A stretch of 63,875 bases of DNA, filler included, from Ministeria vibrans ATCC 50519 (Eukaryota; Protista; Filasterea), in NCBI GenBank assembly GCA_943704425.1. It is 12 parts of 12 records of this genome, joined end to end, with 100 filler letters (N's around TTAATTAATTAA, not from the genome) between each part and the next. Parts side by side here need not be neighbours in the genome. Positions count along the whole stretch, not along the records: positions 33,153 to 41,131 come from CALSCP010000985.1; 11 more parts are not named here. One strand, 5' to 3'. A model generated the notes under the pieces. It saw only the letters and a program-made list of their open reading frames with translations. It did not search any database and was not told where the DNA came from. The position numbers and the translations under genes are program-made. Shown here piece after piece: positions 3,101 through 41,131 of the stretch (the stretch's first letter is position 1; every line of letters starts with the position of its first letter).

Positions 3101-6100
3101 AACGGCGGCTTTTGCGACGAGACGGTCAATGGCTGGCGTTGCACATGCTCGCCCGGCTACACGGGGGTTGCGTGTGAGACGGAAATCAACGAGTGCGAGT
3201 CGTCGCCATGCGTCAACGGCGCCAGCTGTGTCGACCATGTTGCCTCGTTCTCGTGCACCTGTACCTGCGGCTATGAGGGTCTTACGTGCGCCACCAACAC
3301 CAACGAGTGTGCAACTTTTCCCTGTGCCAACGCAGGCACCTGCACCGACCGTGTGTGCGGCTTCTCGTGTGCCTGCTGGGCGGGTTTCACAGGCTCCATG
3401 TGTGAGACCAATGTCGATGAGTGTGCATCATCACCCTGTACAAACGGTGGTACGTGCAGCGACAGTGTCAATCACTTTGCATGTATCTGCCCACCCGACT
3501 TTACGGGTGTTCTGTGCGAGTCAAACATTGACCAGTGTGCCTCGTCACCCTGTGCGAATGGTGCAACCTGTGCCAACGTGGCCACCGCGGCCGGCTACAC
3601 TTGCAACTGTGTGGCGGGCACCACAGGTGTGGACTGCGAGAGCCACGTCAACGAGTGTGCATCGTCCCCCTGCCACAATGGCGGCACTTGCTCCGACGGA
3701 GTCAGCTCGTTTGTGTGCGCCTGCCCATGCGGTTGGGTGGGGGCCAGGTGCGCATCGCCGTTAAACGAGTGCGCATCGACACCTTGCCAAAACGGTGCCA
3801 CGTGTATTGATGGTGTGTGCGGGTATACATGTCAGTGTGTGCATGGATTCTTTGGAGGCGACTGCGAGACAGACATTGATGAGTGTGCGTCGTCTCCGTG
3901 CGAAAATGGTGCCACATGCGAGGCCGCCATTGGTGGCTTTTCGTGCACATGCGCCTGTGGCTATGCGGGCGCAACTTGTGCCAATGACGTCAACGAGTGC
4001 GCTTCCGCACCTTGTCACAATGGTGGCACCTGCGTTGACGGCGTGTGTACATTCACGTGCGTTTGCATCGACGGCTACACTGGCAGCGAGTGCGAAAGTG
4101 ACATTGAGGAGTGCCATTCGTCGCCTTGTGACAATGGTGGCACGTGCACAACAACGGCAGGCGCACCCAACACATACATGTGCGAGTGCCCTTTTCCTTT
4201 CACTGGCGCGCAGTGCGAGACTGACAACGATAAGTGCCTCTCGACTCCCTGTCAGAATGGCGCTACATGTCTGCGATTGCCAGGAGCGGCCGTTGGTCTT
4301 GATGGCTCGTACGCGTGCCTTTGTGCTCAGGGTTACACTGGCTTGGAGTGCGAGACCGACATTGATGAGTGTGCGTCAACCCCGTGCGCCAATGGAGCCA
4401 CTTGTAATGATTTTGTTGCCTCGTACAGTTGTGAATGCGCTTGTGGGTGGTCTGGGCTCCACTGCGACGCGTCTATCGACGAGTGTGCGTCGACTCCGTG
4501 CGTTAACGGCGGCACGTGCATCGATGTCCTATGCGACTTTTCGTGTGTGTGCCCCAGCGGATACTTTGGCAAAGATTGCAGTGGTGACGTGGACGAGTGT
4601 GCGTCGAATCCGTGCCGTAATGGCGCCACGTGCAACGCAGGCGTGGATGTGTTTACATGCGAATGTGCGTGCGGCTGGACTGGAACGCTTTGCAGCGTTC
4701 CTATGGACGAGTGCGTTTCGACTCCGTGTATCAATGGCGGTACTTGCATTGATGCTCAGTGTGATTTTGCGTGTGTGTGTCCCAGCGGATACTTTGGCAA
4801 AGATTGCAGTGGTGACGTGGACGAGTGTGCGTCAAGCCCGTGTGACAACGGCGCCACGTGCAACGCGGGCGTAAACGTGTTTACATGCGACTGTCTCTGT
4901 GGCTACGAGGGCCCAACGTGTGCGGTGGACACCAACGAGTGCGCCTCAAGCCCGTGCGCGCATGGAGGCACTTGCAACGACAATGCTTGCGGCTACGCGT
5001 GCTCGTGTGCCCCTGGCTATACCGGTGTGTACTGCGAGAGTGATATTGACGAGTGTGCTTCCTCGCCGTGTCACCACGACGGCACCTGCAGCATGGCGGG
5101 CACGTCGCCCAGTAGCTTTGAATGCGTTTGCGCTGCAGGGTACACTGGCGTCGCGTGCGAGACGGACGTGAACGAGTGCGAGTCGTCACCGTGTGCCAAT
5201 GGCGGCACTTGTGCAGAGAACGCAATCAGTTCGATTGTGTGCCAGTGTGCCTCGGGGTTTGTCGGCGACCACTGTGAGACGGACGTAAACGAGTGCGTCT
5301 CAAATCCCTGTCAAAATGGCGGCACATGCCTTTCCGATGTTGATTCGTTCAGTTGTGTGTGTGTGTGTGGCTATGAGGGCCCGACATGCGTCACGGAGAC
5401 AAATGAGTGTGCGTCCAACCCGTGTCTCAATGGCGCGGCTTGCGTTGATCTGGTGTGCGGATACCAATGTACGTGTTTGCCAGGCTTTACAGGACTCAAT
5501 TGCGAAAGCAATGTTGAGGAGTGTGCCTCGCTTCCGTGCCAGAATGGCGCGACGTGCGTCGATGCAATCAATACGTTCAGTTGTGCGTGTGATTGCGGCT
5601 GGTCCGGTACCCTGTGTGACATGGCCATTGACGAGTGCGCGTCGAACGCGTGTCTGAATGGCGCCATTTGCGTGGACACCGTGTGCGGCTACTCGTGCCA
5701 GTGTGCTCCTGGCTACTTTGGCGCGCATTGCGAGACTGATGTGGACGAGTGCGCATCGATGCCATGCGAACATGGTGGCTTTTGTAGTGTGCATGCGATC
5801 AACGGTTTCAGTTGTACTTGTCCCCCCGGCTACACTGGGGTTGCATGCGAGACGGACGTGGACGAGTGCTTGTCGTCGCCGTGCGAAAATGGTGGCACGT
5901 GCACCTCAGCGTCGGGTGGTAGTGGCACGTTTGTATGCGACTGTGCCGTGTCGCATACGGGTGCTCGATGCGAGAGCTCTGTCGATCCATGCGCATCTAG
6001 TCCGTGTCACGGTGACGCAACGTGCTCCAGCTTGAACACTCTCTTTTCCTTCACCTGTGGCTGCCCTTGTATGTTTACGGGCACTGTGTGCGACATACCG

Positions 6101-33052: not shown

Positions 33053-33175
33053 NNNNNNNNNNNNNNNNNNNNNNNNNNNNNNNNNNNNNNNNNNNNTTAA
33101 TTAATTAANNNNNNNNNNNNNNNNNNNNNNNNNNNNNNNNNNNNNNNNNNNNTTTTTTTTCTTTTTTTTTTCCAG

Positions 33176-33349
33176 GTGATGAGCGTCATCAAGACACACT
33201 ACGACTCACTCACGCTCAAACTGCAAGACGGACTGGACCGCTTCAGCACATTCAACGAAGGATCAGACGACGCCGAGGCGGCTCTCATGCGCCAGACAGT
33301 CCGTCTGGTCGTACAGGACTGTAAAGACAACGTACTCGAATCTCAATAG
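33176..33349 (+). CDS. ARMH3: Last exon of an armadillo-like helical domain protein 3 (C10orf76/DUF1741-like)
   Basis: V..VIKTHYDSLTLKLQDGLDRF..F.E resembles the conserved NYDTLTLKLQDGLD C-terminus. Confidence 0.75.
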   Translation: MMSVIKTHYDSLTLKLQDGLDRFSTFNEGSDDAEAALMRQTVRLVVQDCKDNVLESQ

Positions 33350-33371
33350 TACACTCAACACACATACACAT

Positions 33372-36320
33372 TCATCGATTGGTCATTGAGCGTCGCTTAA
33401 GCATAATAAAGGCAAGCAGTCGAAAGAGCACAATGAACCCCACTACTCCAGCAACCGCAATCCATTCGTTGGTCAGCGGTGCGCCAAATACTACACAAAC
33501 AAAGCAAAATTCAGTCGGCATCACCAACAAAACAGCTGCAAACTCTTGTCTTTGTACGCTTGAGCCAGAGTTTGCCCTCTTGAGTATGATCAAACTCATT
33601 AATCAGCTGTGCTGTGGTTGCATACGACATGGGCGTGCTCCAGTAGATCCAGCGAAAATACACCGGAATGTTCGGATAAAGACTAAGCAATGTGTCAAAT
33701 CCATGCATCCGTTGAAATGGCCCCTCACCACTTACCACATGACACCACCAAAGACCAACGAAACGACATTGGCAATTCCCGCAATGCCCAGCGCCAGTTC
33801 AATTGTGTCAAAGGCCGCTCCCATCAGCTCATTCAGTGCCAGATACGCATTCATAGACAGCGCATTTACAAGAAACGCAAACCAGAACGATCCTAAGAAT
33901 TTTGTTCAAAATGAAATCGGGAGAGATAGAGAGAAGATAGAGATAGAAGAGAGAAGAGAGAAGAGAGAAGAGAGCAAAGTAATAGAATCAAAGTGATAGA
34001 AACAAGTGACAGAAGTGATATATATGCAACGAGATAAAAGCAAAGTGACAGAAACAAGTGACAGAAGTGATAGATATGCAAAGTGATAAAAGCAAAGTGA
34101 CAGAAAAAAGTGAATAAATGCAAAGTGATAGAAACAAAGCAATAGAGAATTTTTGATTACCAGTCCATTTTTGAAGCTCATAAATAATGATTGTATAGCC
34201 CATACAAATGGGAATGGAAAGCGGAAGAAAGCATATCAGATTGGTAAAGAAATAAGCGCTCACTACACAAGTCGATTAAATTAATACACAGAAAAACGAC
34301 CGATTGCAATACAAATACCAGAGTAGTAATCAGCTGCGTGTTCACGAGAGAAGATGTGACGGTCTTTGATGAATGTGGGCACTGAAAAGAACGCAAACAC
34401 ACTGAAGACGTCCAACTAAAGAGAAATAATAATGAGGGCCACGATTTTGTGCTTCACTCTCTTCCTTTTCGACAAGAGTACCATAAATCCAATTGCAAGA
34501 GTGAGCTGAGCTTGAACTGTGACTGTGATTGAACGGAACATCAGTCCCACCATCAGCGCAATAAACAAATATCCTAAGCAGACCATTTGAGAACTACGTT
34601 TATTTGAAGATTGCCAAAATAGGGTTGCACTTGGTATCAAAGTGATAATAGTACTATCATTAGATTTGACGTGTACATATAATAGTTTGATTTAGGGCCT
34701 CTGCCACAGTCTGCCAGCAAATTTCTTCCTGTGCGTGTTTGCGTACCGAATAACGATTGAAGGGCAATGACTGGATTTCGAATGTAATAGAGAATGGTGC
34801 GTTTCGAAAGGACTCTGAGCTGAAGGAAGAAGGAAGATTTCTGACGGGCGGGCGGAAGAGTAGAAAGGGCAGAATGAGATGGAGTCTCCGACTGGAACGG
34901 GAGAGACTTGCACTTGTCCTTCCAGACAGAAGAAAGCTGAGTGACATAGAGCGAGTGGGCGAGAGATGTCTCACGCGGACGAGAGCCAATCAAAGCACTG
35001 GTGTGACTGTCGTCGTTGTGTGGAGATGCATTAATCTGTCCATTGTCCACATACACGTCAGCACAGTCATCATGATCGTCAGCACTGTCCAGTGTGCCGC
35101 TGTTCGGTCCTATCCCCGACACAACGTCCAACAGGAAGTCTGCTGGGTTCCATCCGCTCGGACACACTTGCTGATGGTGTGTGGCGAAGAACTCAGAGGC
35201 GTCCTTGGCTGCACCGTGGTAAACCAGTTTGCCCTAGAAAGCACATAATTGTCAGATGCGACGTCACAATGTGCGCAGAATTACGTCTGAGAGGAGGATG
35301 AGCGTAGAGATGCGGTTGAAGATGGACGAGCGAGGTTGGTGAAGCGTGCAGAGCACTGCGGTGTTCTGGGTACGACAGAGGTCATGCAGAAGATTCATAA
35401 GCAAGAGAGCAGCGTGTGAGTCGAGACCCGACGTAGGTTCGTCCGCAATAAGCACAGCCGGCTGTGTGAGCAGCTCGAGACCAACGGAGACGCGTCGTCG
35501 CTCTCCGCCAGAGATGCCCCGGATAAAAAGACCCCCCAAACGCGTGTGGCGGCATTTGTGAAGACGGAGATCACGGATGACCTGGTCCACGCGCCGTTGG
35601 CGCTCCAGTTTCGTCAGTTTCGACAGGCGCAGCTGAAAAAAAAAACGTACGTTACTACGAATGCATTGTGTTGTTTCTCACAACGACTGACAAAAAAAAA
35701 ATGAATTCACCTCAGCAGCAAAAGTAAAGGTCTCTTCGACAGTAAAAGTCTCGAGAAGGGCGTCGTCTTGCGAGACAAAGCCGACAATGCCGCGAATTCG
35801 AGCAGCGCTCACCTCTGCGCCGTTCAGCATCAATTGCCCTACACGACACGACACGATATGACAAACGACCCCCTCTCGAGCAATTCCGTGCGTCTCAGTC
35901 GCATGACCTACCTTGAATCTTGACACCAGGCGCAAGCGAGCGGCCCGACACGACGGAGAGAAGTGACGTTTTGCCTAAGAGCACAAAAACGCGTTTGGGC
36001 GAAGGAAATTAAACAGTGCAACGAACCGCTTCCTGAGGGCCCGAAGATGGCGGTGACTTCGCCAGGGCGTGCAGAGCCACTGAGATCATCAAGTACCACC
36101 TTGGACGAGAGCGTTTGTCGTCGTACGAGACTTTTCTACGAGAAATCCCGTGTTTTTTCCAATTTGATTAATTGACTGGACGATAGGAAACTCCTAAGCG
36201 CACCTTGGTCGCCACAGACATGCTCACGTTGGACCAGGAGAGGGACACGCTTGGGCGAGGAGGAGGATCGGCTGCGGCATGCCGGTCAGACTCGACAAGC
36301 AGTGGCTGAGACGCAGACAT
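33372..36320 (-). CDS. ABCG (white-like) half transporter, multi-exon
   Basis: Walker A GPSGSGKTSLL, GFVSQDD, signature GISGGERRRVS, Walker B DEPTSGLDS, TLHQPR, NPADFLLD, C-terminal ABC2 membrane domain. Confidence 0.95.
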
Positions 36321-36517
36321 AGCAAAAACAGTGATGAGTGATCTAACTATAATTAAAATTTTGGTTTTTACAGGTTGATTTGAACTAGTGGTCACTTGCG
36401 CATTGTGGGTGCGTTTTTTTTTTGGCTCTGCGTTCTGTTGCTTCTTCCCCTACTTTCCTGATCACAGTGATTTGTAATGTCTCAGTGTAGTAGTGTAGTA
36501 CATATACTTCAATTGCA

Positions 36518-37630
36518 TCACTTAAACTCCAGTTCAGCGGCAAGCAAGAGATGATCGGACGGCTCGGAGGCGGTAGGAAACGAGTCGATGTGTTCGACAT
36601 CGTCGAGGGACGGGAGCGGGCGCACCCCGCACACATCAAAGCCCTGAGTCATGATGTAGTCGAGAGTGTCAACAAAGATGGGATCGTTCTTCACCTGTGA
36701 CTTGTTTGTGAACTCGGGCTCGGAGCCCGTGGCAGCCACATAGGCGCTTTGAAAGGGATTAGGAAGATCGGGGGTCCAGGAGTCGTCGGTGAGCGAGCTG
36801 GTGGGGTAGTCGGGGTGGTCGGGTGCAAGAGAGCCAGTCGTGAGCAGGGTATACGCCGAGTCGCGCGGCTTTACGTTGAAGTCGCCGGCAAAGACACAGG
36901 GAAGACCACCCGCCTGACGAAGGAGGTTCTGTGCAGACAGCGCTGTGTGGGCAACCATGACTTGCGGAGACTCGAATACACAGGGCATGTGGTAGGTGCC
37001 AACGCAAAACTCACGCAGTCGATCGCTCTTGAGCGCCTTGAGACGCACCACAATCATTTGATTCTTGCGAGACTTGGTCACTCGCCATGCTTCGTCATCC
37101 ACGACAGCGGCACGGGCGGGCGGGGAGGCGGCAGGCGGCTGTGCAAAGAGGCGCGAGAGCCAGGTGAGCGTCGAGGGGAGCCATCCGGACGGGACACTCG
37201 GCGGGCGCTGGGGGTAGCCCTGCTTGGTGTCGGCGATGCAGGTGGTGGACGCCGTCACCACTTCGTAGTGGTCGCGGGGGTACGCAAGAAGCACGCCCAT
37301 GTAGCCGCTGAACTGACTTCCTGGCGAGAAGGACAACAGCGCAAGTTGATCAGACACTTACACACGAAAGTGCGCCAAAGTACCGTAAGATGCGCTGATG
37401 ACGTCGTATTTGGCCTTGGAGAGGTGTGCAAAGATGTTGCCGTACCACATGGTGCTGACTTCCTGCAGGCAGATGATGCTGCCGAGCTGTATTTCCTGGT
37501 CGATCATTTTGAGGACTCTTGGCCGTCGCGTGTCGGGCGAACAGTCAGCGGCCACGCACGACCGGAAGTAGCCCGCCGAGCACAGGTTGGGCGACAGTAC
37601 GTTGTACGTGGCAACACGAATGCGAGCCAT
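36518..37630 (-). CDS. Endonuclease/exonuclease/phosphatase (CCR4/nocturnin/angel-like)
   Basis: ATYNVL, ICLQEV, GDFN, EPEFTN, TLDYI, PSDH motifs; one intron near 37307-37380. Confidence 0.9.
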
Positions 37631-37793
37631 CACGAACAGGAAGTTCCAAAAAAATAAAAAAGGATTGATGATTGATTATTTCGAATGAATAGGTTTAAGA
37701 AGTTTATTGTGAGTATCATACTGGAAAAATCGAAAAATAAATTCATGGACGAGAAGACGTGTCGAGGGTGGAGATAGAGAGCAATTGTGGGTA

Positions 37794-40700
37794 TTAGGGA
37801 GAAAGGGAGGGCGTGGAAACCGGCGGAGGAGCACTGACCACGCCATTTTCGTCACGGTACAGCAGAATGTCGCCCTCGTTGGGCGGGACGTCCCAGTCTC
37901 TCCAGATCCGACCTGCTAGGAGTGCCTGCCTCATGCCGGGGGAAGCCATTGCCTGTAGTCGTCGTCGTAGGTCGCGCACAGAGATGACAGTCTCGCCAGG
38001 CGCAAACCCTTCGCGCGTGGGTCCCAGTGCGTGCACCAGAAGCTCCGTCAGCTGGCTCTGCGATTTGTCATCGGTTAGGTGTCCATTCGCATGTGGTAAG
38101 GAGCTGGTGAGGATCTGGCGCGCATAGCCTGACATAGGTGCGGCCAAATTTGCGCCAATGTCGTCCTTGACGAGCGCACCTGAGTTGCAAAAGTCTGCAA
38201 TGACGAGCACATTGCAGCCCTGCCACGAGACTTGCCCACTCAAGAGCCCACGAAGTACATCCAGATTAAAGCACGACCTGCGGCCATCGGGCGTCTCAAT
38301 CGCATCGCTCAGCACCAGGCCACCGCCTCCGCCGCTCACGCCATGGCCAATCAAATGCACAATCAGCAGTGAAGCTCGACCAGCGTGCTTCCCCGCCTCC
38401 CTCGACAGCTCCAGAGCCGCCTCCTCAATGCGTGTTCGTGTCACTGCCTCCCACTTACCAGTGGCATCCACATCAGAAACAGAGCGCACGTTAAACTTGC
38501 GCTGTCGCCACAGGTCAGACACGAGAGCGACGCTGTTGGCGACACCGGGAAGGTCCTTGTACTTGTGAAGCGGTGATTCATTGGTGCTGCGGTACTTGCT
38601 CACTCCAACCACCAGTGCAGCAGCATGGGTGTAGCCTGGTGGAAGTTCCACATCTACGAAATATAACCAAATATGAGCAGAAAAAAAAGAAGCATTGATA
38701 CATTTCTTACGTCCTGGGGCCACCCACCACTGCTCCAATCGCTCGTTGCACACGCGTGCTTCCCCCGCATGTGCCACCAGTTTTGCAACCACATCCTCCG
38801 GTCGTCGATGCGATTCACTCGCTTGTGCCACATCCGCTGGTGAGAAGAGGGGTGCATTGGTCTTGAAGGGATGGGCGGGCACAAGGACGGGTGTGCCTCG
38901 CCAGCCCCAACGCAGCGAGCGAGTGCCGTTGCACACGGCAACACAAATGCGATCCAGAGTACACTGCACTCGAACGGCGTCACTGTCGTCGGTCAACTCA
39001 ATGCGCACAAACGACTCGTTTGCGTTGAGTCGCAAGCGCAGGGGAATACACCCCTCCATTGTCATAGCATCGGTGCACCGCTGAGTCGCACGGATGGGAA
39101 CCGTAGAAAGCGACTCGCGCCACAGCGCCACCATGAGAAGGTGAAAGGTGGCGAGGGAGACGGGTAGCAACTCGGCGTGATTGAATTGGTAGAGGAACAC
39201 CTGAGCGGGAAGAGAGACAGGCGCATCGAGAAAGGGTGCGTGGGCGGGGAGGAGCATGGGCACAACGAGTTGCTTGCCGCGACGCAAAGCGAGGCTGAGT
39301 CGCTCGAGGCAGAGCATAAACGCAGGGACGTCGGTGACGTCGGCACCAGCAAGGAGTGGAATGAGCTCGGGTTTGGGAGGCCAGAGCATGCGGCTGATCC
39401 TTTTAAGCAACGAAAGCGACTTGGGAGCCGCTTCGCTGGGTGCAACAAAAAGCGTTTTCGACTGACTCTTTGCAGCGGTCCAGACCAGCCACTCGGCAAC
39501 TTCGGCTGGGAAACCACACTCTGACTCGCACTGCGCTGCTGTCAACTCAGCGAGGAGTCGAGTGGTACGCAACAGGTCACACGCATTTCCCGCCGCTTGG
39601 ACCTCACGCAACATGGCCAGCGCACGCTTGCTCTTTGCCCGTCCCCACTGCGCCATCACCACCGAACACAGCAACTCCAGTGCCCCAATCAGACGTGGCA
39701 CGTCAAACACAATCGTGTCGGTGTCGCACACCCGCTGGCTCGTTGCATCTGCACGACACACCAGAATGTCTGCAGCACTCTCTAGATAGGGCACGAGACC
39801 GTCGCGTATTGCGTCCGCAGTCGGCATCATGCCACCGAGTGTGATGTGAGGGGTGTTGTTGAGCTCGAGTGACTTAAGCTCGTTCACACTGGACATGAGT
39901 TGAACGTTGCCCAGTCGCGCCCATCGGCCAATCAGATCCTGCGCTGCCACCAACTCCAACGGAAGCTTGCGATTACGCACAGCCTTGTACATGGCTGTGC
40001 TCACCGCCGACAGTCCGAGACGGGCCCTGCTGCCCACTTGGAAGAAGGCCACATCGGGTGTGTCGGGCGGCATGACAAGATGATTGTCCAGCGCTGACCC
40101 GACCAGACGGAGAATCTCACGGGAAATACAAAGGAGGCGATCGGCGGGGACTGTGTTGTTGGGGAACGTGTCGACGTGTGTGCCCACAATTATCACGCGG
40201 AAGTACGACTCGTCCGTAGTAGGCACCTGGTGGGCAATGATGTGTGCCCACTTTGTGAGGTGCTCGTACTGGCGTTGGGCAAGACGCGGGGTATTCATGA
40301 CGGAGAGGTCAAAGACGAGGACGTAGACAGACTCTGAACCCATAAAGAGAGCCGGAAGAGAGTCGTACATCGACTCGCCTACAAAGTCAAATGTGGAAAA
40401 ATGAGTAAAAAAATAATCAAATTTTTGGTCATATACCTGCAAAGTCAAATGCGTCCATGTCGACGTGCTCTCCGCGAACCTCATTTGTCAGCGACCCGGT
40501 CATTGTGGGAGATGCGACAAATGGCAGTGGGGGATCAGAGTCGGTGATGGTGGTTGTGCCAGATGTAGGTCGTGGTTGAGCAGGAGTGGAATCAAGTGTT
40601 GTGTGGGCGGGGGAGGAACGAAACGTCGATGGTCCAGCGCCACCTTCGTCCTCATCGCCTTTCACATTTTCTTCGCCCTCGTGTCCTGCAAAGAACCTCT

Positions 40701-41131
40701 CCAGACGCAACTCGTCCAATGGAACAGTCTCAAACACACCCGCTCCCGCATTGTAGACCATTCGCATTTTGTGCATGCGAGTGGCAATGGAACGGTCTTC
40801 CTCGTCAGGCAACTCTTCTCCGCGCAGTGCAGCCACCAGAGCCGTCTTGCCCGCCTCAGTCGCACCCAGGAACAGCACTTTGATTGAGCGACAGTTCACT
40901 GAGCCACGTTTCATGGCAGCTGTGTATGCAAGGTTGTAGGGAAGAGCACTGCAAGATAAACGAGTGAATCGAGACAAAATGGTTGTGGATAAACTTACGC
41001 CAACAGCTCAGAGATGGACCATTCGGTGCGAGTGCCGTCTCTAGCGTGGGCAACAAGGTGCTCACTGGTGAGCTCAATCTTGACGGGACTATACACGTTT
41101 CAAATAATTATGAAGTCAAGAGGTGCAAGCG
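37794..41131 (-). CDS. Roc GTPase - COR-like region - caspase-like (peptidase C14) fusion protein, 5' partial
   Basis: Roc: KVLFLGATEAGKT, FDFAG, FM....VYVLVFDLS, VIIVGTHVD. C14 fold: ALVVGVSKY, DLPG, LIVHLIGHG, VIADFCNSG, ARQILTS. Introns at ~40952-41000, ~40380-40436 and ~38655-38711. Confidence 0.82.

Follow-up and report, generated by a model that had tools for sequence, protein, structure and literature searches.

An expressed eukaryotic gene predicted to join a Roc-COR switch to a caspase-like protease, with a WD40 propeller upstream in related loci

Bacterial proteins composed of leucine-rich repeats (LRRs), an AP-GTPase (Roc), a COR domain and a variable C-terminal effector have been described with at least 24 different effectors, among them TIR, caspase and trypsin domains, and with up to 11 paralogues in a genome (Kaur, Iyer, Burroughs and Aravind, eLife 2021, PMC8195603). 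They were read by those authors as counter-invader systems. A gasdermin-activating protease from Runella, labelled Roc-COR-CHAT, has been purified and cleaves the gasdermin, and its catalytic His and Cys are required for toxicity (Johnson et al., bioRxiv 10.1101/2021.06.07.447441). Among eukaryotes, ROCO proteins of brown algae and of the stramenopile-alveolate-Rhizaria (SAR) lineages carry a C-terminal IPR009003 peptidase and LRRs encoded one unit per exon, with exon shuffling, and have been proposed as immune receptors (Front Plant Sci 2024, PMC11378527). Here we describe a gene with a related layout in DNA assigned to Ministeria vibrans ATCC 50519 (assembly GCA_943704425.1). The window is a stretch of 63,875 nucleotides, filler included, made of 12 joined parts of this assembly, and the analysis was confined to its positions 33153-41131 (record CALSCP010000985.1) and to fetched relatives. 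The gene is expressed and spliced; it encodes a putative Roc GTPase, a COR-like domain and a caspase-like Peptidase C14 domain in one frame, and in related loci these are preceded by a WD40 beta-propeller.

The original prediction, made from the sequence alone, had regarded this locus as a candidate for an undescribed system, namely a one-component switch in which Roc-COR dimerisation activates the fused protease. The observation behind it was confirmed, and the interpretation was partly supported. Its claim of novelty has to be narrowed, as the layout is known in bacteria, where Roc-COR-caspase proteins are listed (PMC8195603) and where the Runella Roc-COR-CHAT protein provides one experimental case, whereas the eukaryotic WD40-fronted family appears to be new. 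Literature searches combining ROCO with metacaspase, and AP-GTPase with caspase, returned nothing on a eukaryotic Roc-COR-caspase protein.

All the short motifs from which the gene had been recognized (GATEAGKT, DFAG, GTHVD, IGHG, DFCNSG, LPGVANS, ARQILTS and GDILL) were found at their places on the minus strand. They belong to a single minus-strand gene that runs from 41088 to 37794 and is cut by the edge of the piece. Two minus-strand open reading frames (ORFs) of 896 aa (40484..37794) and 182 aa (40977..40429) overlap here in different frames, because a 58-nt intron (intron B; features and coordinates are collected in Table 1) splits the Gly codon of the DFAG motif. The 896-aa ORF in turn reads through a 57-nt intron (intron C), because this one is in frame and free of stops. 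It was spotted because seven of eight database homologues end exactly at this point, which they do because their copies of the intron contain stop codons. For the domain assignments below, the Pfam and NCBIfam scans and the AlphaFold2 (AF2) folds were made per exon.

The gene model was compared with transcripts by aligning to positions 37700-41131 four runs (X1, X4, X13 and X20) out of the public ones that contain this sequence, among whose labels are algae, seawater and marine metagenomes. Contigs from these runs skip exactly the three intervals that make up introns A, B and C, each of which ends in CT..AC on the plus strand, that is, in GT..AG on the strand of the gene. The joint of intron A was found in the RNA-like run X1 only, while those of introns B and C were found in both RNA-like runs, X1 and X13. 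None of the three was present in the DNA run X4, whose contigs cross introns A and C unspliced. The frame is kept at each joint, and the joints connect Roc with the WD40-like exon before it, the two halves of Roc with each other, and the caspase-like domain with COR. For intron C, the X1 contig extends 77 nt on one side, and a single X13 contig of 421 nt has 224 nt from the caspase exon on one side of the joint and 197 nt from the COR exon on the other. An X1 contig connects the Roc exon with the upstream exon at 40999-41088, and X1 contigs leave the window sequence for other letters at 41089, right after a 'tatag' acceptor, so that at least one more exon must lie beyond the piece. The short GT-AG introns that had been proposed are thereby borne out as three exact joints seen in RNA-like contigs and not in the DNA run, and the locus is an expressed, spliced, single eukaryotic gene of a small multi-copy family. 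Other joints (GC..GC, TG..AG and TG..GG, some of them also present in DNA) were treated as chimeras of paralogues or of assembly.

Alongside near-identical contigs, all four runs contain many that are 90-99% identical to the gene; in X1 the counts are 61, 36 and 45 at 99% or more, 95-99% and 90-95% identity. The contigs at 90-99% identity in every run indicate several close paralogues, alleles or strains per sample. Two other observations concern the introns. The last 14 nt of intron B nearly repeat the 14 exon nt before its 5' splice site at 40437-40450 (ATTTGACTTTGTAG versus ATTTGACTTTGCAG), which might reflect the origin of the intron or provide an alternative acceptor. A fourth in-frame intron was considered at about 39371-39460, where the window gene has 30 aa more than most homologues, and was rejected: the stretch is GC-rich, has no GT..AG pair of sensible size and no RNA joint, and a related stretch occurs in locus L004.

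The protease is the best-defined part of the protein. The last exon alone matches Pfam Peptidase_C14 (PF00656) at E 3e-8, with 34.1 bits against a cutoff of 21.4 and so above the gathering score, and the protease of the L004 homologue matches it with 32.4 bits; a weaker Pfam match to CHAT is also obtained. The sole NCBIfam match, to the bacterial model caspase_w_EACC1 (2.5e-12, 46.7 bits against a cutoff of 140), identifies the nearest model and not membership. This match, also below cutoff, recurs in 13 of the 14 family members, and the top ESM Atlas neighbours of the protease are all bacterial C14 clusters, which is a lead and not proof. The likeness to prokaryotic caspases noticed from the motifs is upheld by both of these results. 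An AF2 model built on a 14-sequence alignment (A3) reached a predicted local distance difference test score (pLDDT) of 85.5 and a predicted template modelling score (pTM) of 0.88. Foldseek matched this model at probability 1.0 to caspases, MALT1, the bacterial protein GSU0716 and Yca1. VIA-align gave Z 18-19 to MALT1, to the Arabidopsis metacaspases AtMC4 and AtMC9 and to caspase-4 and -9, aligning about 205 residues at a root-mean-square deviation of about 3 A. Because these scores are tied, the fold does not choose a protease sub-family.

The predicted His/Cys dyad sits in the canonical places. In the model, a strand at residues 95-102 is followed by His103 and a strand at 147-154 by Cys155, which is the arrangement of the caspase/hemoglobinase fold. 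Across 14 sequences that are 43-80% identical, no change occurs at His103, Gly104, Asp153 (two residues before the Cys, Cys-2), Cys155 and several further positions. When the family profile is aligned to AtMC4 (E 2.4e-4), the two His residues face each other and the Cys faces Cys139, and in the C139A mutant entry 6w8r an Ala stands in the column aligned with the protease Cys; the pair that had been described as intact is thus both invariant in the family and aligned with the AtMC4 catalytic pair. The replacement of a metacaspase pocket Asp by Ser, read earlier from the LPGVANS motif, was found again in this profile alignment, in which Ser stands opposite the Asp of the AtMC4 'VNDV' in the window gene and in every aligned family member. 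Because of this replacement the gene is filed as caspase-like C14 and not as a metacaspase. Its P1 preference probably differs from that of a typical metacaspase, since the Asp at Cys-2 is kept while the second pocket Asp is Ser; this view draws on the known pockets of TbMCA2 and MALT1. A complex prediction with two copies of the protease domain reached a best score of 0.26 against a mark of 0.32, and counts neither for nor against dimerisation.

The Roc assignment rests on motifs and on profile comparisons. The G1 (GATEAGKT), G3 (DFAG) and G4 (GTHVD) motifs are all present, and GxxxxGKT, the candidate switch I Thr and DFAG are invariant in the five aligned members. Pfam Roc (PF08477) is the top family for both halves of the domain, with 17.6 bits for the N-terminal half (profile positions 1-41) and 19.1 bits for the C-terminal half against a cutoff of 27, and it reaches 25.6 bits in the L004 homologue, whose ORF reads through the intron. 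The scores are depressed because the intron splits the domain, because the halves were searched apart and because of a low-complexity insert of about 65 aa. The best sequence matches of the family profile in the PDB are LRRK2 Roc domains, where the family consensus GTHLD (GTHVD in the window) aligns to the GTHLD of LRRK2. A profile of the C-terminal Roc half plus COR, searched against 1.84 billion representative proteins, retrieved only family fragments and four weak matches (E ~1e-4); these four, which lie outside the family, carry Pfam Roc and/or COR-A. The insert is a Ser/Thr/Pro-rich, disordered stretch found in the Roc G domain of every family member (about 2170-2440 in L001), variable in sequence and retained in RNA contigs. 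It is unusual for Roc domains, and might act as a loop for regulation or phosphorylation, or be the target of a protease.

The region between Roc and the protease was identified by structure and by profile-profile alignment. About 350 aa of it gave no Pfam or NCBIfam match, Pfam COR-A included, and in the profile search of 1.84 billion representatives no protein outside the family aligned to the COR part. A Pfam scan, one of the checks named with the original prediction, thus returned Peptidase_C14 above its cutoff, left both halves of Roc below theirs and did not return COR. The AF2 model of the long exon, made from an eight-sequence alignment (A2), has pLDDT 69 and pTM 0.48, with pLDDT values of 65-95 over most of residues 140-555. 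The top 15 Foldseek matches of this model are all Roco proteins, namely the LRR-Roc-COR and RocCOR forms and the isolated COR domain (3dpt) of C. tepidum Roco (CtRoco), LRRK1 and LRRK2, with probability 1.0 to 6hlu, 3dpu, 3dpt and LRRK1. VIA-align scored Z 10.1 to 3dpu_B and 9.7 to 3dpt_B, the latter over 283 of 299 residues (model residues 139-555), which is the whole CtRoco COR. Scores were lower for LRRK1 (8.4) and LRRK2 (about 7), and unrelated folds appeared from Z of about 6, among them Rag GTPases (matching the G half), winged helices from ESCRT-II and GGDEF domains. In hhalign, the family profile aligned to P0023, which carries Pfam Ras, Roc and COR-A, at 95% and E 2.6e-8 over 424 columns that run from Roc through the whole COR. 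On the structural comparison and hhalign together, we accept the middle region as a divergent COR domain placed directly C-terminal of Roc. The earlier description of this region as COR-like agrees with these results, at a length of about 417 aa, and so does the placing of Roc, COR and C14 in one spliced frame, for which the in-frame joints, the Pfam C14 match and the COR comparisons speak together.

A separate feature of the COR region is a 30-aa coding insertion at 39371-39460. The 97% variant P0001 has it too and L004 has a diverged version of it; the other six homologues lack it. In the model it corresponds to residues about 308-338, a loop predicted with low confidence.

The N-terminal region of the protein, which had been described as cut off by the end of the contig, is indeed truncated, and a WD40 propeller takes this place in related loci. 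The first eight homologues were ORF fragments from environmental assemblies, and no annotated full-length family protein was present in the libraries searched. The related contigs share one order, with the N-terminal half of Roc, the C-terminal half of Roc together with COR, an intron and the caspase ORF, and loci L001, L002, L004, L005 and L006 all show COR followed by the caspase ORF. The upstream DNA is long enough in four loci (L001, L002, L003 and L005), and each of these has a same-strand WD40 array immediately upstream, in which each small exon encodes one blade; the array is predicted to form a beta-propeller of about eight blades. The propeller seems to be the first part of the gene in L001 and L003, where the sequence before the ATG either looks non-coding or is the end of another gene. 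The exon at 40999-41088 of the window aligns to the last blade of L001, with D, T and W positions in common at 24% identity, a match that is weak alone. In the related loci the complete protein is predicted to run from a WD40 propeller through Roc and COR to a caspase-like C14 protease.

One sample, ERZ23497376, contains at least four diverged copies (L001, L002, L004 and L006). In L001 a gene for a CAP-Gly domain protein (Pfam E 6e-22) lies at 5217-5537 on the plus strand, about 157 nt past the caspase ORF. Because this neighbour is unlike that of the window gene, which is an endonuclease/exonuclease/phosphatase (EEP) gene, the copies may belong to a dispersed gene family or to several related organisms. 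No relative turned up when 185,579 prokaryotic species genomes were scanned for the two catalytic-site motifs of the family, and none in JGI metagenome contigs scanned for conserved family motifs; in both cases the motifs are very specific and exclude close relatives only.

The sequences of L001 and L005, which come from two samples and are 97.7% identical across 4.2 kb, were compared for evidence of selection. In WD40 blades 3-7 there are 15.5 non-synonymous and 1.5 synonymous differences, a ratio of non-synonymous to synonymous rates (dN/dS, Nei-Gojobori) of 3.2. Elsewhere dN/dS is 0.52 for the N-terminal half of Roc, 0.35 for its C-terminal half with COR and 0.23 for the protease, or 0.31 for Roc, COR and caspase together, and the contrast between WD40 and the rest gives a Fisher p of 0.0026 on raw counts. 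These values point to purifying selection on Roc, COR and the protease, and are suggestive of fast change in the WD40 blades. The WD40 replacements adjoin the conserved Asp of SxD and occupy the GHxx turn, and the SxD and GHxx loops form the top, binding face of WD40 propellers.

On balance, the evidence tips slightly towards a receptor comparable to a nucleotide-binding LRR receptor (NLR) or to an apoptosome, in which a Roco GTPase replaces the ATPase of the STAND (signal transduction ATPases with numerous domains) class; the mechanism that follows is our inference. The WD40 propeller would sense a ligand, such as a pathogen protein or an altered-self protein, and would otherwise hold the protein off. 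Binding of the ligand would alter which nucleotide state Roc-COR is in and whether it is a monomer, a dimer or an oligomer, and this change would free the fused protease domains or bring them together. The protease would then cut itself, an executor substrate or both, leading to cell death or to an immune response; the Runella Roc-COR-CHAT protease acts in this way on gasdermin. A wider proposal, which we put forward tentatively and hold to be possible rather than probable, is that the family forms a class of innate-immune or cell-death receptors of marine protists, with a diversifying exon-modular WD40 sensor, a Roc-COR switch and a built-in caspase cleaving an executor, possibly gasdermin-like as in Runella. 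Such a 'one-protein apoptosome' would give eukaryotes a third way to regulated cell death, one based on a GTPase. Several points weigh against the receptor reading. No member has a known activity, ligand, substrate or phenotype, and both the dyad and the GTP site are predicted. The window holds the last WD40-like blade only, and the propeller is deduced from paralogous or orthologous loci; the fast change of its blades comes from one sequence pair and 17 substitutions. The Roc domain scores below the Pfam cutoff, the insert of about 65 aa in its G domain could impair GTPase function, and confidence in the COR model is only moderate. The RNA status of X1 and X13 is a label deduced from the spliced contigs themselves, and the contigs, at 421 nt or less, nowhere span the whole gene. 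In addition, CtRoco, the best-studied Roco protein, is monomeric with GTP and dimeric when nucleotide-free, the reverse of a simple picture of dimerisation on GTP (PMC6337361). Many Roco proteins, such as LRRK2 and the Rocos of Dictyostelium, act in trafficking or signalling and not in immunity.

An alternative that we consider unlikely yet serious sees in the protein, rather than an immune or death receptor, a regulatory Roco protease doing ordinary work, for instance in trafficking, the cytoskeleton, the cell cycle, or signalling linked to life stage or stress. Its caspase-like domain would process specific substrates, as many metacaspases do outside cell death. Characterised eukaryotic Roco proteins do work mostly in signalling and trafficking (PMC6337361), and nothing in the window ties the gene to infection, its neighbours being the EEP-family gene and an ABC transporter. 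WD40 propellers are, moreover, general protein-binding platforms. An ordinary job fits less well with a family that is multi-copy and diverged within one sample, in whose WD40 blades replacements outnumber silent changes against apparent purifying selection elsewhere, and whose nearest architectural relatives are bacterial conflict and death systems. The family is also narrow, with COR homologues amounting to a few fragments among 1.84 billion representatives, which is unusual for a housekeeping gene. It is improbable, in our estimate, that the caspase-like domain acts only on its own polypeptide, by one self-cut that unlocks or releases WD40-Roc-COR, or that it is a non-catalytic scaffold, with the GTPase module as the output. 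Self-processing is common in clan CD, the S1 pocket departs from that of typical metacaspases by its Ser for Asp, and the NCBIfam and Pfam scores are modest; against this, the His with the Gly after it and the Cys with the Asp before it are invariant in the 14 sequences, an invariance at 43-80% identity that argues for catalysis under selection, and the studied Roc-COR-CHAT protease cuts a separate substrate (bioRxiv 10.1101/2021.06.07.447441). Least probable by far is an artefact, in which neighbouring WD40, Roco and caspase genes, or a bacterial contaminant, have been read as one gene. Prokaryote-style gene callers do break the related loci into separate ORFs, the nearest sequence relatives of the protease are bacterial, and an in-frame ATG at 40914 could begin a shorter protein. 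However, the splice joints are in frame at canonical GT..AG sites and missing from the DNA run, the breaks in the homologue ORFs coincide exactly with intron positions, the database ORF P0014 and the window ORF both continue from the end of COR into the caspase, and the two very specific catalytic-site motifs found no relative in the 185,579 prokaryotic species genomes.

The surroundings of the gene were annotated as well. About 160 nt downstream on the same strand, at 36518-37633, lies the EEP gene (Pfam PF03372, E 1.4e-7), which is placed in Eukaryota by ESM Atlas. It is represented by two abutting ORFs in different frames and so probably also contains a short intron, and the short spacer points to a compact eukaryotic genome. 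Further on, at 33372-36100 of the minus strand, an ABC transporter gene is present in several ORF pieces. The piece at 35908-36099 has a Walker A-like GPSGSG, Walker B and the ABC signature lie at 35264-35590 (Pfam ABC_tran, E 9e-8), and further pieces downstream are hydrophobic; the whole resembles an intron-interrupted half-transporter in which the nucleotide-binding domain comes first. Positions 33890-34260 are AT-rich (GC about 0.39-0.40), with a strong AT skew and long low-complexity Leu/Ser/Phe ORFs on the minus strand, and are probably intron or intergenic simple sequence in or beside the transporter gene.

Table 1. Features of the Roc-COR-caspase gene, in gene order, with positions counted along the window
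Feature	Position	Strand	Remarks
Truncated intron farther upstream (3' end only, up to the edge of the piece)	41089..41131	minus	AT-rich; acceptor 'tatag' at 41093-41089; stops in all three frames
Exon, last degenerate WD40-like blade	40999..41088	minus	Frame open, runs on across the 50-nt intron
Intron A, 50 nt, GTAAGT..TTGCAG	40949..40998	minus	Skipped exactly by an X1 contig, 91 nt on the shorter side; X4 contig 30 unspliced
Exon, linker and N-terminal Roc half	40437..40948	minus	P-loop 40866-40843; candidate switch I Thr; DFAG (G3) 40446-40437
Low-complexity Ser/Thr/Pro/acidic insert, ~65 aa, between switch I and G3	40495..40689	minus	In 5 of 5 aligned members; crossed by RNA-like contigs of X1 and X13 without a joint
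Intron B, 58 nt, GTATAT..TTGTAG, splits the DFAG Gly codon	40379..40436	minus	Joint 40377/40436 (cut +1) in X1 and X13; none in X4
C-terminal Roc half	39963..40378	minus	G4 GTHVD at 40184-40170; Pfam Roc profile positions 56-119, 19.1 bits
COR-like domain, ~417 aa; helical/winged-helix N-part and alpha/beta C-part	38712..39962	minus	AF2 model, Foldseek, VIA-align, hhalign
Intron C, 57 nt, GTAAGA..TTCGTAG, at the COR/protease boundary, in frame, stop-free	38654..38710	minus	Joint 38653/38711 in X1 and X13; X4 contig 26 unspliced
Last exon, caspase-like Peptidase C14 domain	37797..38653	minus	Pfam PF00656; AF2 model
Predicted catalytic His (IGHG)	38345-38343	minus	
Predicted catalytic Cys (DFCNSG)	38189-38187	minus	
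Asp at Cys-2	38195-38193	minus	
Ser in place of the metacaspase pocket Asp	38534-38532	minus	LPGVANS motif
Stop codon	37794..37796	minus	

Compared with the individual parts of known proteins, the gene shows both likeness and clear departures. With LRRK2, LRRK1 and the C. tepidum Roco protein it shares the Roc-COR tandem, a THxD-type G4 (as in LRRK2) and the predicted COR fold, but it has no kinase, LRR or ankyrin repeats, its WD40 repeats are N- and not C-terminal, its Roc domain contains the disordered insert of about 65 aa, and its output would be a protease. How Roc-COR controls an output domain is debated even for LRRK2, and a Roco protein with a protease as output would be an easy assay of GTP state, oligomeric state and cleavage together. 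With metacaspases and the paracaspase (AtMC4 6w8s, AtMC9, Yca1 and MALT1) the protease shares the fold at Z 18-19, the aligned His and Cys, and the Asp at Cys-2 as in DSCHSG and DxCR. It is unlike them in the Ser at the pocket Asp, in having no metacaspase prodomain or p10-type features that were identified, in its weak similarity (E 2.4e-4) and in that the nearest models are bacterial caspase types.

As a whole system, the Apaf-1 apoptosome and the NLR/STAND proteins resemble it in outline, with a sensor of WD40, TPR or LRR repeats, a nucleotide switch and a caspase-type protease activated by assembly. WD40 repeats are the sensor in Apaf-1 and in fungal NLRs of the HET-E type, in which these repeats are under diversifying selection. 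The gene is not a member of this group, since its switch is a Ras-like GTPase with COR, its sensor is N-terminal and its effector C-terminal, and its protease is fused and not recruited by CARD; no NB-ARC or NACHT domain was found in the Pfam scans of the exons. The ROCOs of brown algae and the SAR lineages are likewise eukaryotic Roc-COR proteins with a C-terminal protease and repeats encoded one per exon, but their peptidase is trypsin-like (PA clan) and their repeats are LRRs, and a caspase is unmentioned in PMC11378527. The single WD40 blade per exon and the loop-focused replacements seen here resemble the exon-modular LRR receptors proposed for brown algae, and the family may represent a candidate receptor type for marine protists, in which virus-driven cell death matters ecologically and receptors are almost unknown.

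The closest resemblance in layout is to the bacterial proteins. Like the AP-GTPase conflict systems, the family has a repeat sensor, a Roc-COR switch, a C-terminal effector (caspase being among theirs) and multiple paralogues, per genome in their case, and those systems too are read as immune or death devices. The gene is not one of them: their sensor is an LRR where here it is WD40, their hosts are prokaryotes where here there are spliceosomal introns, and they are known from computation only; nor did the specific-motif scan find a close bacterial relative of the family protease. The Runella Roc-COR-CHAT protein, compared here by description, likewise has a clan CD protease, with a His/Cys dyad, attached C-terminally to Roc-COR, and its proteolysis triggers cell death. 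That protein is bacterial, is encoded beside its gasdermin substrate and is of the CHAT type, whereas the gene described here is eukaryotic and intron-bearing, carries WD40 at the N-terminus in related loci and encodes a protease closer to Pfam C14. Even if its function should prove an ordinary one, the gene would offer a clean new domain architecture among eukaryotic Roco proteins. With a module of the bacterial Roc-COR-caspase/CHAT kind inside an expressed, intron-bearing eukaryotic gene, it suggests a link between the death machineries of bacteria and eukaryotes.

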